From Paragordius varius (Eukaryota > Animalia > Nematomorpha), in contig OZ176051.1 of assembly GCA_964247055.1 (NCBI GenBank), positions 7,936,001 to 8,000,000 on the forward strand: a stretch of DNA of 64,000 nucleotides. Reading direction: 5' to 3'. Shown one piece after another: positions 1 through 38,052 of this stretch. Both the position numbers and the translations under genes were made by a program. The notes below the pieces were generated by a model, which was not told where the DNA came from, did not search any database, and saw only the letters and a program-made list of their open reading frames with translations. How positions within the stretch are numbered: the stretch's first letter is position 1; the number at the start of each line of letters is the position of its first letter.

Positions 1-116
1 GCGATTTTTCACCTTTGTATATATGTACATTTTTATACAACGTTAAGGTAAATAAATAGATTGACTTTTTTTCCTCCAAATATTTTCCGCATCCTTCATT
101 TATTTTTCTACTTTAG

Positions 117-589
117 ATCGATATTCCCAAACCCTGCTTCCATCAAGTAAATCTATGACTTCCTTTAGGGGTGGAGTGTCTCCCCTTGTGACTGGCGATG
201 CTGCCTTTCAACCCCTGTTAGTTTCAGAAGTAGCATCAACTGATGAACATCAAATTTATGCTTGTGCCTTGGAATATATTGCACGGGCCTGGGATGGTCA
301 AATGTTATTAGCCTTGGCTTGTTGTATCAAACAAGCCCTCGTATATGTCAAATATGAATTGGGTGCAGCTTTACACACCATCACCACTTCTGTGGGACAA
401 ATTCAATCACTCGATGAATCGACGCAAAAAAACGCAATTACTCTTACATTAGATAATTCTAATAAAGAACATGCTGGCGAAGATGATGAGACTCAACAGT
501 ATATGATTGTTAAATATGAATTAAATTCATTGGGCCGATGGCAAATGGTGGTTGAAAATAATGTCATATATCAAGGGACAACCATATAA
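117..589 (+). CDS. Terminal coding exon of an unidentified gene that starts before the window
   Basis: Pyrimidine-rich acceptor (tttttctactttag) ends at 116. The open frame continues through the listed ORF 155..589 (RYSQTLLPSSKSMTSF...YQGTTI*), and the region is GC-richer than its flanks. No family recognised. Confidence 0.6.
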
Positions 590-29553: not shown

Positions 29554-32500
29554 ATGCTCCCTACTTCTGCCAAAGTTTCTGTGCTAAGTCTTTTTTTAAC
29601 TACAATACTCAGTGGTGTTGGGATTTTTTCCAATTTTTGGGCCCTTTGCTATTTTGGAACTTTTGGTCTTTGGCAATTTTGCTCAGTCAATCAGTGTTAT
29701 TATACATGGGATCGATTCGAGATGTTCACGAAAAGTGCGGACCAATTTCCTGGTATGAAAATATTCAAATATTTATTTAACCCATATCCATTAAAAATTT
29801 AATATTTTTAATTAACATTACACCTGCATGTCGTTATGCGCGTACAAAAGGGAGGAATAAAATATATTTTAATGGATGTAATTTGTATTATAACTGTCAA
29901 TCCATAAAAGTATTAGAAATTAATTATCATTATTATACTACCGTTGTTTATTATGTGAATGAAAAGGGTAAGTGTTTAACCTTAACCCCAATTTAATCAA
30001 TACGCGGTGTATAAATAATTTATAACTTTCGCTTTAGATAATGGTAATATGAATGTTAATAGGAATGCAAGCTATTCTTACCTGATATAATTAAACAAAT
30101 TTTATATAAACATATGTGTTATAAGTATTGATTTCAACACCTTCCATCTTGGATTTAAAAGCTATTATATTTGTTCTCAATAATTTTTTACTTCAGTTCA
30201 ATGGATCAATAAACTTTATTTAACCTGCCATCATGCGTGAAATAGCATTCCTGTGCCAATAAATAGGTTTTTCCCTTTTGAGCAGTGTTAATTCTCTCTA
30301 TACCTGAGAGCCATATGTGAGCTTATTTTTTTCCACTCTAAAAACCTATAAACGGCTTGCTTGGTTTAATTTAGCGTTAGCATTGCTTTCACGAAATGCA
30401 TGGTGAGAAAAAATTTTATATATGTTATTAAAATTACCAGGCCATAATTTTTTTGTAGCCGCATATTAAAGATATATCCCAGCTTGCCTAAATACATCAA
30501 AATTAGCTAAAATTGATATAATTTATTTCAAATCTCCTAATCATATCTATAGAGAGAAGCAGGAAGTGGATAAGTTTTTTTTGGTTGAGCGAAATATAAA
30601 TAAATTTACACACTTTCATATATGTTTATGAGAATTTATTTTATATATATCATATATACAAAATGTATAATTAACGGTTAAAATAACATTGAGTGGCCTA
30701 TATATCACAGGTATGTGAAAAATAACTCCATTATACGTAATTTGCACACAGAAAATTATATACATGTACACATATATTTGCAATGAAAAAAAAAAGTTTA
30801 AAAAAAGCATTTTCTCTACACCTTAAAATGACCTAAACCATTCTTTCAAAAACGAGGTTCGAACGAAATTCAAGCAATTTTTAATTACAATGCACATTGG
30901 CTTTATGGCCTAGCTTGCATTCCGTGATTCTTTTTTCACGCTCGTGGAAATTTAATTTAAATAAATTTATGTTTAAATTATAAAAATGTATATAATAAAC
31001 ACGTTATAACTTATTGATTTTAAATTATACTACATTAAATTATTTGCTGTAAAAATACCTGGTTATTGTTTTATTATACAGTATTATTTGATGTAATAAA
31101 AATTAAATAAATATATATTGTGTGTTTCTTCTTTCATTCCATTTTTTCGCATACAGTTATAACTATCACTCGTTATTTATGGCTCTGTTTTTATTTCATA
31201 TATTTATAATCGCGTAAATAATACTTAATATTATTATTTGAATACCTGTGCTCTTTTACCTCAAAAATATTTTAAACCATCCCTATCATTATCACAATAT
31301 ATATACACTTTGCAAAAACTTCTATAAAACATATCAATTTATTTCTTTTTTTGTATTCAAAGATTGGTATTTTTGGTAATAATTTTATATAAATATATTT
31401 TTGTCATCAATTAAATATTTATTTTGTTAATATTTCTTAATTTTTTTATGCATCAATTACGTACTCCACATATATGTGATTTTTGATTAAACACTAAAAA
31501 CAAAAGTTAAAATAGGGCGTGTGGCGTACCTGATTTATTGATAATTTATTTATTATTAATTGTAAATTATAAAATTTAACCTTTCCAATACAAACATTTT
31601 TGAAGCATAAAAAATTGTTTATTTTACGCAATTTTACTTTATTCCATATTAAATGAGTTTATTGCCGATCACTTAAAACACTAATAATTTATTTTTAATA
31701 TCTCTTTTTAGCTTCCGGTGTCATTTATATCGATTACTACGATCTATTCTTTAAATGACATAATCTGTTTAAGGAGGATATCCTGAAATTTACACCTCTA
31801 AGTGTTTTCAATCCTTTATCAGTATTATAAGTAGTATTTCGCGGTTTTAGTCATCAGTTTATAGAATCCCAACTTTTTCCTTTTTCCCCCCCTCTAAAAA
31901 ATGTTTCGGTCCGGTGAAAAGGTGTTGGAAAGGGAACGTGACATTGAACGCGTATATTATCCGAATGAACCAATGACCTATCCTGTTGTGGGAACGACTA
32001 TGCAAGGTGGCGGAGCTGCTGGTAACACTATACGTTATTCTGGTTATCCTAATGTTATTACAAACACCACCCTAAACACTGCTGCTGGACCAAATCAACA
32101 ACAGCAACAGCAGCAGCAAACTCAACAAATGCCTGCCCAATTTTTCGCTACAACACAAATGCAACCGGGCCAAGCTCCCATGCAATTGCCCCAAACCACG
32201 GTTAACACATATGTGGGGGGTGGAGGAGGAAACACACTCCCACGAGGCGAAACTAATGTTATTGGTCGACAATCTATGCGAAGAAATGGAGGTGGTGGGA
32301 CACTTCAAAGAGGAGATATTGCCGCCGCTAATAACAATGGGGACAATGTTAGTGAATGTCGATCCTGTTCCATATGTTCATCAGAACGCTCAGTAGCTGA
32401 AGATGCTTATAGGCAAAAAAAGAAACGACGCATGTTGGGTAAATCATTTCCCCTTGCAGCTTTGTTAATTGGTTTACTCATCTGCGTGAGTTTTATCAAT

Positions 32501-35500
32501 TGGATTGGTATATGGAGTCCTTTTTGGGCACTGGCAAGGAATCCGTTCCTTATATATCCCGTTACATCGACCACCACTGTGAACACAGGGGTCCGGGGTG
32601 TCGGTGGCTCCGGCGTTGGAGGAGCCGGTGATATTCCTGTACTTTTGAATCCACAAACAGTTCAACCGCCAGGCGGCCGCATTGGTATCGGGAATCCCAT
32701 TTTTGGACACTTGGGTATATGGGCCTATTGTGCACCAAGAAGTTTTTGTGTGACATACCCGTATGGCAGGGCCAGACCTTATGGATTTTTTTCAGCTGCA
32801 GCCTTTTCCCTGTCATTAGCCGGGCTTGGAGGCTTTTTTACCCAACTTTTTGGTGGTCCCTTGTTGGGTAACTTGGTGGGTGGGCTAGGGTTCGGCGGTG
32901 GTTTACCAGGTGCCCTGGGTCCCGGATTCGCTGGTTTAGGTGGTTTTGGGGGAACGGGTGTCCTAGTCAAAAAGCGAAGTTTACGCGACGACACCATGGA
33001 TGATAGCAACAATGCAATTTTTAATAGTCAAAACAATTTTTATTCCTATAAATTGCCAATTCACTCACAACATAAACGTGATATATCTCCTTCATCATCT
33101 GATCCCTTTTTACGTCGCTCTGGACGCCGACAAATACAGCCTCAATCTCACATTTCAGCATACGGTATAAATCCACAAGCCTACCACCAGCCTGCGTTTG
33201 GCATGAATACGGGTGTACCCCGTTCACTCGCATCAGTATTACCCAGTAATATAACGCACCCATTCTTTTTTTATGATGTGAAAAGCCCGGATGGAATAAA
33301 TCCCAAATTGAAAGACATTGTCAGTTTCGTTAAACACTACAAGGAAAAATTGGAGAACCCCAAGAACAGGGGAGGAACTGCTACCGGTAATGCAAATTCA
33401 TCCCCTACCTTCCAACGAGCTGGTAATGTGAATGATCTTGATGGTAATCGATCCATTCGTCGTCAAATGGACTCCTCCCCATACAACGCCGGTAAGGATG
33501 GTTCGGTCAAAGAAACCGATCCTGATTCTTCCCTATCCCGTAACAATCGACAGCTCATAAATCAACCTTTGATGGATATGGGTGCAGGTATAGGGGGCGG
33601 TTCACTCATGAACAGTGGCTGGGGTCTTGGCAATTTGGGGTTAGGTGGATTGGGTGCCTTAGGCTTGGGCGCTTTCGGAAATCGATTTGGGGGTCTTAAC
33701 GGTCTCCTTGGGTCTCAACAAGCCCTAGTGGCGTTTGCTTTGTTACAACCCGGCCCCGAGGGTATACCTTTGCCTGAAAATTTTTTGTTCTCCCTTCCGG
33801 GTAGCATAAGTCCTTTCGCTTACTTCCGGAATCGTGTGCGGGAAAATGTTGGTACGCTATTAATATAACTATTTACATTTAGTTTTGGGATTAATATGTT
33901 TCTAAATTATTAGATCTTAATAATTTTTAGTATCTATGGATTATTTATAAAATTATATTCCATACTAATTGAATCCTACCTAATACACTGCATTAAATGT
34001 TTTAAAGTTAATATTTATTGCTGTTATTGTTTACACGAAAAAAGATTAATTAAAAATATTTAATTTACATTTTTTCCTTAAGGCTAACTAAACATCAAAC
34101 TACTATGATAACAAACATATAAGGTCATTTATGACTCATTGTAAAAGAGAGCTAAAAACTTTACATAAAATTTTTGAAAAAAATTTACAATCTAAATTTT
34201 AGCCATAACATTGATTGAAATTGATACATGTAATAATATACTTACAACATTGTAAAATTTTATTTTTACTCTAATCTAATGGTTAGAACAAGCTTGTTCA
34301 CATCTTTTTTACCTTAAAACATACATACGCGCATGTTATAATTTAGCTGAAAAATTAAACATAAAACCTTATACACAAAATATTTTATCGATCTAAAATT
34401 CGAAGGACATTTTTGTTTTTTAATATGTTTTATATATATATTAATATGTTGTAAAATTTACCTGTTTAAATGCTAAAAAAATTATATTAACTTAAAGCTA
34501 TAGGAAATCATCCATAGTTAATAAAAACAATAATTGGGGTATTTTCCAATACTTTGTTCTCTATTGGTAATGACACACATGTGACAAAACTAATCAATAC
34601 CTATATCATAATTGTGTTAATGTTCTCAAGGACAATTTTTTTAAATAAAATTTTTTAATATAACTCTTGCCTTAATAATAATGAACTCTGTAGCATGAAT
34701 GTCTTTTGTATTCATGACATAGTTTGTTTTACAAATATTGATTTTGGTTCATAGAATATATTATTTGATATCCGACCTTATTAATTATTTAATTGAGTCT
34801 GTATTTCGATTTTTCGCAATAATTTTTCGGCTATTTCTGTCTTTTATAATTTAAAAGTTTTGTCGAAAATTTAACGAATTAATTAGGGTTTTTAATTGTT
34901 TCTTATATGTTATATTTATATAATTTAAAAATTTTAAGCCTTTTTAGATATACACAAATTTTTCGCATGTTTAATCCTTCAATACTGTTAAGCTAATATA
35001 CGAAAGCCGCCACCCCTTAAAGTGATTCCATCATTGTTTAGCGCCTATTTCCGATTTTTAAATACAGATATAGTGCTTAAAAATACTACGGTTCGAAAAT
35101 GTGGTTTATTTGAAGGATTATTTTGACATATCACGGTGATGATGGATATCTCTTAGTTTGAATACAAACTTTGGGGCATTTGAGGCAGCTTGGACTATAA
35201 CGTTCTGTTGCTACGTATCTGTGCGAGGAATCGATTCTGCTGTAATTTTTTTGATCCTAGGGCAGTTTAGGTGCATTCCATGTTTTCCAGATCCTTCTAC
35301 TGAGTCCAACATAAAAAGCCTTTTCTATTATCAGCTCTCCACACATAATTGAAGAATTTTAGTTGAAGTTATTAAGGTAGGATTTGTTTGTTTCATCATT
35401 TTGCTTAGTTCTCATTATGTATATAAAACATTACCTATAGGACCAAAATTTAAATGCGTTAAATTTATTGCAATCGGTAATGAGGGTCCACCTGGAAAAC

Positions 35501-38052
35501 CATTGTTTCTGTTTCTCGCTTGTTGATGGAGGTCGGAAATTTTTTTGTAGAATCGATTTAAGTTTAATTGATTGACATTGCTATTTTTCTGTTAATGTCT
35601 ACCATAGAGGTACCATTTATTCATATAGGTAATTATGAATTTGTGACAGTATTTCTGTTTACCTCAGTTGAATTGATAAGCCGTTTGTATTTGTCATGTA
35701 TTGAATTTTCTTGGGTGTAGTTTTCAGACCCCATTCGATGCTTTATTTTTTATTATATTTAAAAGTCATAATAGGTCTTCTTTTGTTTCGCTGATTCTAA
35801 TTTCGTCGGCCAAGTGTAAATCGATGATCTTGCCTCCTATTCTGATACTAAGTGAGTCTTCTACTATCATTTTTATTATATTTTTAGAATATAAATTGAA
35901 CAATGATAGGGAGATAGGATCCAGTGTCTAACCTTTCTATATTTATCTTATTGCTGCTTTTTGATTTGTTTAAAGATTGTTGAAATTTATATTTAGTGGA
36001 ATGCCTACCTTTGTTATATTGTTTCCCATAGTTTTGTAGGATCCACTCTACATAGGCCTGTGAAAAATCCAGGCATATATTATTCTTGATGTAGTCGTTG
36101 GATTGTTTATTAGGTTTAATATGGAGTCTCTATAACTATATAACGCTGAAATCAGCCTGTTTATTATATATGAAGTTATTGTACCAATCTATACCCACTT
36201 ATATTACTTTGAATAATATTTTGATAATATGGGGTATGAACGCTATTATTCTGTAATTCTCTAATTTTTTCCTGATTCTTTATTATTATGGTATAAAGAT
36301 TTCAATCTTTTGCGCACTGGCTTTTTAACAGAATCGTTTGGCAAAAATTTATTTTGATTTTATTGGTACTAGCACCTCTCCCGGGATTCGGCTATCTCGG
36401 GGGTTTGTTGGAAGTTCTACAAGCGCGTTTTCAATTTCTGCTTGTGTCTAGGATCTGTTTTATAAATATTTTTTATTGTATTTGTTATATTTGTAAATTT
36501 TACCGATACCTATTTTTCCCATTTGGTTGAAATTTGTTGGTTAGCAGGTTTCCTTCATTGTTGTTTATTGCTATGTTTTGGATTTTTTCAGGGGAGGAGA
36601 GTTTCGGATACTTCCCGCAGTTTTTGGTGACATTGCTTACGCAAAGCTGATATTTAAGCTAAAATGTATGAGTGGTTTTAATATATTTCCCATCCTGTTA
36701 GTGTTTTGGCTATAGTAAATGATGATAGGTAGTGGTTTTATATTGATAACAAGTTGTGTATAGTGAATTCTGGTTTAATTAAACTAAAATCGAAGACTTA
36801 CTTAATAAAACCTAAGAATGTTGCGAGAAATTAAATCATTAGTAACTATGGCCAAAAGAATTCCAAGATCGACATATCAAACCATAACCTACTCACAACT
36901 TTTTTTACAGATCAAAACAAAAGAATATTGTATGTATTGATCATTACTTCTTAAAAAGCACTAGAATAATATCGGAAATTATATATATATATATATAATT
37001 TAAATTTAAAAGAAAAATTAATGGGATCTTGGGGTTACCCTGATAGAATATATATTTGAAAATTACGCAACAATTAGTATTTATATTTTATTTGGCGACT
37101 AATTTATGTATAACTAGTTAAACTTTACTAATAATGACTTTATTTTTCTATAAAAAAATGGAGTATTTGAATTTTTTATTTATTTTAATAAGACATCCGT
37201 TCAAAAATTCCAAACATACCTATCTTGTTTACTAGTTATTTTATATAAATTTTCACATTTTAATTGTCGACCATAATATAGCCTGGTTCATTAGTGTTCA
37301 AACATTGGTTGGTGTGGGTTTCGCCCTTAATCTGTTGGGCTTCATCCTGGGTATCCTTTATCTATGCACATACTATTCCAAAGCTGGTCGGATTTTGGGA
37401 CGTCTCGCTGGCATACTTATATTTTTAGCAGGTTAATTTGTATATCTGTTATTTTGTATCATCGAATATAACTTTACATCTTTTATGTTTTTTTACAATA
37501 TTATACCTTATCACCAAAATAAAAAAGTATTTATATTAAATAAAATCGTGCCATTGAAATTATTAACAAAAATTATTAGGTAAATGTGATTTTGAAATTG
37601 ACCACCAAAATTTATAGTTATTAATTTATTTTTGATATATATATATATATATATACAGTATGAATAAGTATACATTACTAGTTTTTCATATTGCCAAATA
37701 GCATATGCGGAAAAGAGAAATTATTGGCTTATAATAGTAAAAAGTGAAAAAATACTATATGCCAATAATATATATTAATTTGTAATAATTTATGAAAAAA
37801 GTAGCAATGTATACTTACTTATACTGTATATCAATTATTTGTGTATGCGTAGCCATTTTGGAATTGATTGGGATTTGTGTGTTCATTGCCAAAGTTCGCT
37901 TAGACCGTAATGCATTTTTCCATATTGATCCGGCATTTACCATACATTCAGGCGTGGGTTGGGCCTATTACGTTTCATTGTCTGGAGCCTTGTTGCTTCT
38001 AATATTGGGTCTGTTTATGATGTGGGAATCGAGTTTTGAAAATCGAGCATAA
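29554..38052 (+). CDS. Claudin/PMP22/EMP-like tetraspan protein, short isoform (182 aa)
   Basis: Exons 29554-29752, 37282-37431, 37853-38052 (549 nt). TM1, then FW..GLWQFC....C; PAWFISVQ-TM2; TM3; GWAYY-TM4. All phases are compatible. Confidence 0.75.
31901..38052 (+). CDS. Claudin-like tetraspan protein, long isoform (766 aa) with giant first exon
   Basis: Exon 31901-33851 ends in phase 1 (GTT G|gtacgc) and joins the same exons 37282-37431 and 37853-38052 (2301 nt). It contains TM1 and the IGIWSPFWAL and HLGIWAYC...C motifs. Confidence 0.75.
35150..36500 (-). mobile_element. Degenerate RTE-like LINE reverse transcriptase remnant in the claudin-like intron
   Basis: Minus strand reads ENYRIIAFIPHIIKILFKVII (~36270), QADF and ICLDFSQAY (~36150-36060), LHLADEI (decayed YADD, ~35810) and EWGLKTTPKKIQYMT (~35730), with stops and frameshifts. 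Confidence 0.75.

Follow-up and report, generated by a model that had tools for sequence, protein, structure and literature searches.

A horsehair-worm claudin-superfamily tetraspan with a predicted long isoform whose first extracellular loop carries two conserved glycine-rich blocks

By means of a compact first extracellular loop (ECL1), proteins of the claudin superfamily form paracellular barriers and modulate channels. GSG1L also has an enlarged ECL1, and the loop of the junctional protein occludin is far shorter than the one described below. In claudins, ECL1 carries the motif W(X>8)GLWxxC(8-10X)C (PMC3879130), and the extracellular loops of occludin are rich in glycine and tyrosine (quoted in PMC2132999). 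Here we analyze a locus in a 64,000-nucleotide stretch of the genome of the horsehair worm Paragordius varius (Nematomorpha; GCA_964247055.1, contig OZ176051.1, positions 7,936,001 to 8,000,000 of the forward strand), which we call the window and whose positions we number from its first letter. The original prediction for this locus was a four-pass membrane protein with a giant Gly-rich extracellular loop that, as a proprotein, sheds structural or signalling peptides at five basic motifs. Our analysis makes it rather probable that the locus encodes instead a long isoform of a claudin-superfamily (Claudin_2) tetraspan, in which an alternative first exon swaps a compact first transmembrane segment (TM1) and ECL1 for a disordered tail of 182 amino acids (aa), TM1 and an ECL1 of approximately 445 residues, and in which two Gly-rich hydrophobic blocks (A and B), separated by a polar spacer, would form an extracellular collar.

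The open reading frame (ORF) that holds the loop runs on the plus strand from 31901 to 33868 (655 aa) and contains every string on which the original prediction was based, including the Gly/Leu/Phe blocks and all five basic motifs. Within it, the long first exon (31901-33851, plus strand) comprises the cytoplasmic tail, TM1 and, upstream of the shared TM2, approximately 445 residues (aa 206-651), close to the 440 or so that had been proposed. A GT dinucleotide directly follows position 33851 in phase 1 and is compatible with the acceptor of shared exon 2 at 37282; joining the long exon to exon 2 and exon 3 (37853-38049, then TAA) gives a long isoform of 766 codons with consistent phases, in agreement with the 766-aa model proposed earlier. 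The short first exon (29554-29752) has a donor of the same phase that fits the same acceptor. For P. varius, the joining of the long exon to position 37282 is a prediction from splice sites and phase.

A word-index search with the whole exon against 5.8 billion proteins returned a protein of the horsehair worm Gordionus as the sole homologue, and an exhaustive profile search with the TM1-ECL1-block A core against 1.84 billion representatives retrieved Gordionus only. The 90% cluster of this match has a second member, P0002 (742 aa), which is present in ENA and RefSeq and in which the long exon is joined to TM2-TM4 through a junction, RENI-A-WFISVQ, identical to that inferred for the window. 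The shared exons of the window are 72-73% identical to P0002. The Gordionus locus (L005), whose annotation was guided by RNA-seq, has the same order as the window, with a short exon (L005:5042-5239, 56% identical to the short exon of the window), the long exon approximately 5 kb downstream and the two shared exons.

The analysis of P0002 places the tetraspan in the claudin superfamily. Window exons were searched against Pfam one by one and each remained sub-threshold, exon 3 alone reaching an E-value of 0.028 with Claudin_2 and the short exon giving a weak match to TMEM37 (E 0.004). P0002 was used for the whole-protein tests. P0002 matched Pfam Claudin_2 (PF13903) with 45.6 bits (cut-off 29.1, E 9e-12), aligning aa 625-734 to profile positions 83-191, which correspond to TM2-TM4; its second Pfam family was PMP22_Claudin. 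In the AlphaFold model of P0002:131-742, the predicted local distance difference test score (pLDDT) was 70-83 for TM2-4 and near 60 for TM1, and the extracellular sheet was modelled at low confidence, with strands predicted around the Cys pair. A fold search with this model gave Cav gamma-1, DUOXA1, TARPs, claudin-15, MP20, a designed claudin fold and claudin-19 among the top 13 matches, with Z scores of 9.4-12.2 (Cav gamma-1 12.2, TARP gamma-7 10.8, claudin-15 10.4, MP20 10.2) and alignments that span TM1 to TM4. Such Z values are singly not decisive for helical bundles, and the weight lies in the recurrence of the claudin fold in most of the top 13. The best match to an ESM Atlas model was GSG1L (TM-score 0.78). 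The ECL1 encoded by the long exon reads W209 ... G272-I-W-A-Y-C277-x5-C283, and both first exons contain, in colinear order, the W, the G[LI]W and the two Cys, with a Cys spacing of 4-5 residues vs 8-10 in the published motif. There are four strong hydrophobic segments, with KKKRR before TM1 and a basic loop between TM2 and TM3, and one extra marginal segment in block A. Because of the Pfam score of P0002, the claudin-fold structure matches and the presence of the ECL1 motif in both first exons, we conclude that the tetraspan is a divergent member of the claudin superfamily, well supported by the orthologue, which gives the tetraspan body of the original prediction a claudin-type identity.

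The whole long-exon stretch is, judged by its sequence, coding and not intronic, because it keeps an open frame with raised GC, is colinear with the Gordionus ORF, shows mostly synonymous variants and has no DNA tandem repeats under the Gly blocks. The window DNA is approximately 26% GC, and its single GC-rich island, at 32-34 kb, is the long-exon ORF (42-54% GC). In the DNA sequencing runs, five of the seven exon variants listed were synonymous and the exon was less variable than the introns. The five runs that hold the long exon are DNA contigs, with even intron coverage and no splice joints. This bears on the possibility that there is no giant-loop tetraspan, either because the long exon stands alone as a gene of one exon, like the 637-aa Gordionus model P0001, or because unannotated introns, which the original prediction had named as a danger to it, remove part of the loop. 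One of the two Gordionus models does end by read-through a few codons past the donor, and the runs found for P. varius are DNA. However, conservation ends exactly at the canonical phase-1 donor in both species (G/GTACGC in the window, G/GTAAGC in Gordionus) and the sequences read through beyond it bear no relation to each other; of a claudin fold, the exon supplies just one quarter (TM1 and ECL1), and its phase is that of the short first exon; the joined 742-aa form is in ENA and RefSeq; and the spacer stays open for approximately 200 codons, with raised GC, in two AT-rich genomes. We therefore regard a separate gene or a loop shortened by introns as very improbable.

Table 1. Parts of the locus and of the long isoform, with their window coordinates and their nonsynonymous divergence (dN) between the window and Gordionus.
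Feature	Residues (aa)	Window positions	Strand	dN	Remarks
Short alternative first exon		29554-29752	+	0.35	TM1 and compact claudin-type ECL1 (FWAL ... GLWQFC-x4-C); donor GT at 29753, phase 1
Cytoplasmic N-tail	1-182	31901-32446	+		Q/G/N-rich, mostly fast-evolving; KKKRR just before TM1
Unconstrained part of N-tail	24-147			1.06	
TM1	183-205	32447-32515	+	0.168	FPLAALLIGLLICVSFINWIGIW; Kyte-Doolittle 2.36; additive insertion energy -1.07; AlphaFold helix
Claudin-type ECL1 core	206-295	32516-32785	+	0.068	SPFWAL, conserved insert of ~55 aa, GHLGIWAYC-x5-C; 92% identical to Gordionus
Gly/Leu/Phe hydrophobic block A	296-355	32786-32965	+	0.088	First 22 residues a marginal helix, then GGP turn and a 56% Gly segment
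Polar, disordered spacer	356-560	32966-33580	+	0.90	All five basic motifs; ~200 aa; pLDDT 25-35; 27% aa identity
Basic motif VKKR↓S	356-360	32966-32980	+		Conserved; VFKR↓S in Gordionus
Basic motif HKR↓D	391-394		+		Lost in Gordionus
Basic motif RRSGRR↓Q	405-411		+		Lost in Gordionus
Basic motif RSIRR↓Q	517-522		+		Lost in Gordionus
Basic motif RNNR↓Q	547-551	33539-33550 (RNNR)	+		RNNR conserved; following Gln is Asn in Gordionus
Gly/Leu hydrophobic block B	561-616	33581-33748	+	0.207	75% identical to Gordionus
Pro/aromatic tail into TM2	617-650 (for dN)	33749-33851	+	0.053	PGPEGIPLPENFLFSLPGSISPFAYFRNRVRENV; 91% identical to Gordionus; exon end G/GT, phase 1
Shared exon 2		37282-37431	+		TM2, short basic inner loop, TM3 start; 73% identical to Gordionus exon L005:22527-22673
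Shared exon 3		37853-38052	+		Remaining TM3, second extracellular loop, TM4, short C-tail, stop; 72-75% identical to L005:22782-22973
Shared TM2-4 exons together				0.18-0.23	

To see how selection acts along the protein (Table 1), we compared the window with Gordionus region by region by Nei-Gojobori estimates of dN. The claudin-type core, block A and the tail before TM2 are the most constrained parts of the whole protein, above its transmembrane body, which is the unusual point of this locus. Block B is constrained about as much as the transmembrane body. The spacer, with a dN similar to that of the unconstrained N-tail, drifts almost freely, retaining its length, its polarity and a few short islands. 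Two of these islands, YG[IL]NPQAY (33161-33184) and F[FY]YD..SP.GI (33266-33298), look like linear motifs. Synonymous sites are saturated between the window and Gordionus, so the divergence of the two species is deep, and because the Gly blocks are near-invariant despite this saturation, their conservation lies clearly beyond chance. The most Gly-rich sequence of block A, GGLGFGGGLPGALGPGFAGLGGFGG (aa 327-351, 32879-32953), is 56% Gly, and block B contains GLGNLGLGGLGALGLGAFG (aa 575-593, 33623-33679). Internal duplication was ruled out as the origin of the blocks, since block A shows no similarity to block B beyond composition and none to the shared TM2, and a microsatellite origin was ruled out by the lack of DNA tandem repeats. 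Pfam scans of the loop pieces found no family, the spacer included, with a weak Lamprin match (E 3.5) as the only echo of the Gly-rich sequence; searches of PDB sequences with the loop returned nothing, and a search of the ESM Atlas by features gave no usable loop match.

Whether the spacer lies outside or inside the cell depends on the number of membrane passes, since four passes would expose the basic motifs to the lumen and six would hide them. Insertion energies were calculated on an additive biological scale without positional terms, and are indicative only. The TM segments of the long isoforms have Kyte-Doolittle values of 2.0-2.4 and insertion energies of -0.1 to -2.9 kcal/mol, with TM1-TM4 of the long isoform itself at -0.1 to -1.1, the start of block A has a Kyte-Doolittle value of 1.51 and an insertion energy of +2.45, and all other Gly-rich windows lie at +4.9 to +6.5 kcal/mol. 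Block B is thus not an autonomous transmembrane segment, because its insertion energy is at least +4.9, and both blocks (+2.45, and +4.9 to +6.4) have too little hydrophobicity to form such helices by themselves. AlphaFold gave block A a helix-turn-helix and block B a short helix, both with a pLDDT of 31-47, left the rest of the loop disordered and continued the Pro/aromatic tail as an N-terminal extension of the TM2 helix.

An unlikely alternative on these data is a six-pass protein, in which the start of block A (FFSAAAFSLSLAGLGGFFTQLF) would cross the membrane where claudin TM2 follows beta-4, block B would return, and the spacer would be a disordered cytoplasmic loop, possibly phosphorylated at KRS or SP motifs. 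With the spacer in the cytoplasm, the basic motifs could not meet the convertases of the secretory pathway. In both species AlphaFold places a helix of 24-33 residues directly after the strands of the Cys pair, and the Kyte-Doolittle value of block A is close to the usual threshold. The positive-inside rule agrees with the conserved KKR/KR behind block A and with the RNNR in front of block B. In the window protein as in that of Gordionus, the net charge of the spacer is +9, and helix packing mediated by Gly would suit the exact conservation of the Gly-rich sequence. The original claudin paper left the same ambiguity, not excluding an extra membrane pass in the hydrophobic ECL1. However, the helix is modelled with the low pLDDT given above, the return through block B is energetically weak when compared with the true TM segments, the TM2 of the Pfam profile aligns to the shared exon and not to block A, and block A does not resemble the shared TM2. 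Block A sits inside a run of 64 residues without a charged residue, and the GGP break in the middle of this run fits a hairpin that enters and leaves on the same side equally well. One additional pass on its own cannot be reconciled topologically with the claudin body, and the pass back would be very weak. At somewhat better than even confidence, we therefore favour four passes, an extracellular spacer, and blocks that lie at the membrane interface or re-enter the membrane. The caveat already attached to the original prediction, that the Gly blocks might be membrane segments, is supported.

Only two of the five basic motifs, VKKRS and RNNR, are kept in Gordionus. They lie where the spacer meets the hydrophobic blocks, one at either end, with conserved flanks (V-x-K-R-S-[LI] and RNNR-x-L..LIN.P..D). 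The Gln that was expected to begin three of the released products is not conserved either, that after RNNR being replaced by Asn. Dibasic pairs are not enriched (6 vs 3.6 expected in the window protein, p 0.14; 6 vs 3.4 in Gordionus, p 0.10), RxxR is modestly over-represented (4 vs 0.9, p 0.008; 3 vs 0.7, p 0.02), and there is no canonical furin site R-x-K/R-R, so that the basic motifs exceed chance only weakly. Potential N-glycosylation sequons (N-x-S/T) number zero in the P0002 loop (aa 167-627), despite 12-20% Asn (3.4-5 expected), and three in the window loop (3-3.6 expected), none of them conserved. In peptide precursors the products between the cleavage sites are conserved, the opposite of the pattern in the spacer. 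We therefore find no support for a precursor that yields conserved peptides, whether signalling or structural, because only two of five sites are conserved, dibasic pairs are not enriched, R-x-K/R-R is absent, the spacer evolves near-neutrally (dN 0.90) and the Gly blocks have no conserved site that would release them.

Cleavage at the two conserved sites would free only the spacer, both Gly blocks staying tethered, one to TM1 and the other to TM2. This leaves a narrower form of processing, in which a lumenal loop would be cut at KR↓S and RNNR↓ and the spacer excised like a connecting peptide, producing a two-chain claudin with free Gly-rich ends. We consider it decidedly unlikely. The conservation of both bracketing sites with their flanks, the excess of RxxR in both species and the greater parsimony, by insertion energy, of the four-pass topology that would expose the sites are all consistent with it, and the retention of nothing but length and polarity is what a freely evolving, excised linker would produce. 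These points are offset by the absence of R-x-K/R-R and of dibasic enrichment, the loss of three of the five sites and of the Gln starts, the absence of a conserved peptide product, and the simpler explanations available for basic residues beside hydrophobic stretches. Little probability attaches to the bolder version, in which cleavage would free Gly-rich ends that act on membranes or self-assemble, and would thereby activate the two-chain claudin as a device for adhesion or sealing, or one that resembles a fusion peptide, at the epidermal junction or the interface with the cuticle, an invention of horsehair worms. The simplest view of the basic residues at the spacer ends is that they mark, by their charge, where the hydrophobic blocks stop; cleavage at these residues is possible and would release only the spacer.

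In the four-pass collar reading that we favour, the enlarged ECL1 would consist of a claudin core (W...GIWxxC-x5-C), block A, the spacer, block B and the Pro/aromatic tail. Block A begins 12 residues past the second Cys, and 35 residues separate the end of block B from TM2; because of these short distances both blocks would stay close to the outer leaflet and to each other, with the spacer looping out. Together the two blocks might make a hairpin, interfacial or re-entrant, that sits on or within the outer leaflet, and give the extracellular side of the claudin a greasy collar that associates with itself. Such a collar could alter side-by-side or trans packing across the gap between cells or between cell and cuticle. 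What would then count in the spacer, as a flexible loop, is its length and polarity and not its sequence. Several points weigh against this. In both AlphaFold models, which drew on no more than 2-4 sequences, confidence stays under 40 across the loop; the three Arg immediately preceding TM2, like the KKR immediately following block A, would be compatible with a cytoplasmic position as well; and exact invariance of Gly-rich sequence is commoner in packed membrane helices than in loose adhesive low-complexity regions. The runs found for P. varius are DNA contigs, the Gordionus models are RNA-seq-guided predictions and not verified transcripts, and the comparison rests on two species. We infer the collar and its adhesive action, in part by analogy with the Gly/Tyr-rich loops of occludin.

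The tail that the long exon places before TM1 contains two islands conserved in Gordionus, KVLERERDIERVYYPNE (31919-31969) and the Cys-rich SECRSCS[IV]CSS (32351-32383), of which the latter (SECRSCSICSS in the window) lies approximately 20 residues before TM1. The first may be a motif for binding, the second a site of palmitoylation or a metal site. A CAA/CAG run at 32096-32119 encodes a poly-Gln tract in the same tail that is not kept in Gordionus. In the intron between the two shared exons, the depth at 37523-37920 is 20-100x that of the surroundings in all four DNA runs. With short inverted arms at 37651-37690 and 37791-37831, this segment resembles a high-copy repeat of the miniature inverted-repeat transposable element (MITE) type. 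The main holders of the exon are runs X1, X2 and X5, of organism A; X3, with organism code B and from a separate study, holds it at 0.55 of the sampled words, and may be a sister species or a relabelled sample. The X5 contigs diverge by approximately 1.8% in the exon and by more than 4% in the introns.

No paralogue of any exon was found in the P. varius genome. When this genome was scanned exon by exon with the Claudin_2, PMP22_Claudin, TMEM37 and L_HMGIC_fpl profiles, other loci matched and the locus studied here did not. The genome (G000) contains more canonical Claudin_2 loci at C1:14221331-14225570, C5:8106005-8106298 and C5:2718583-2724450. Word-index searches with the short first exon and with P0002:560-742 gave no match, the latter probably because Gly-rich words swamped the search, and no synteny of the flanks with Gordionus was detected. 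The tetraspan has so far been seen only in horsehair worms and is apparently restricted to Nematomorpha.

A loop of approximately nine times the usual size, brought in through the choice of first exon, would be a natural experiment on the capacity of ECL1, the more so as its Gly-rich low-complexity parts surpass the transmembrane body in conservation, and it could show how a little-studied phylum of cuticle-bearing parasites seals or anchors its epidermis. The locus also illustrates cleanly how purifying selection acts residue by residue on low-complexity sequence beside a freely drifting spacer. It adds no precursor of peptide hormones or cuticle peptides.

Compared with described systems, the protein resembles the claudin, PMP22, EMP, MP20 and calcium-channel gamma superfamily in its four strong predicted TM helices and in the W...G[LI]WxxC...C of its ECL1. 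It differs from that superfamily in the length of ECL1 (approximately 445 residues vs approximately 50), in the two Gly-rich blocks and 200-aa spacer placed between the Cys pair and TM2, and in first exons that Pfam profiles do not recognise. Precursors processed by convertases, and type I and type II membrane proproteins, share with it basic pairs and RxxR in a possibly lumenal region, two of them conserved here; however, the window protein has no signal peptide, so that its entry into the secretory pathway would rely on TM1 as a signal anchor, it has no amidation or other maturation signals, and its sites bracket a linker and not peptides. Proteins of the GGLG type (lamprin, elastin, chorion and cuticular Gly-rich proteins) likewise alternate Gly with Leu, Phe or Ala in uncharged, moderately hydrophobic sequence. 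There is no significant match to them and no tandem unit, in contrast to them the blocks are anchored in the membrane on both sides, and their sequence is exactly conserved, which is unusual for elastomeric repeats. Viral fusion peptides and the hydrophobic core of PrP are marginally hydrophobic Gly-rich segments to which the blocks can be likened. Occludin belongs to an unrelated family (MARVEL, a domain that matched in no Pfam scan), has loops rich in Gly/Tyr rather than Gly/Leu/Phe, and lacks a disordered spacer. As a junctional four-pass protein it nevertheless offers, as a working principle only, a precedent for Gly-rich low-complexity sequence that faces the paracellular space.

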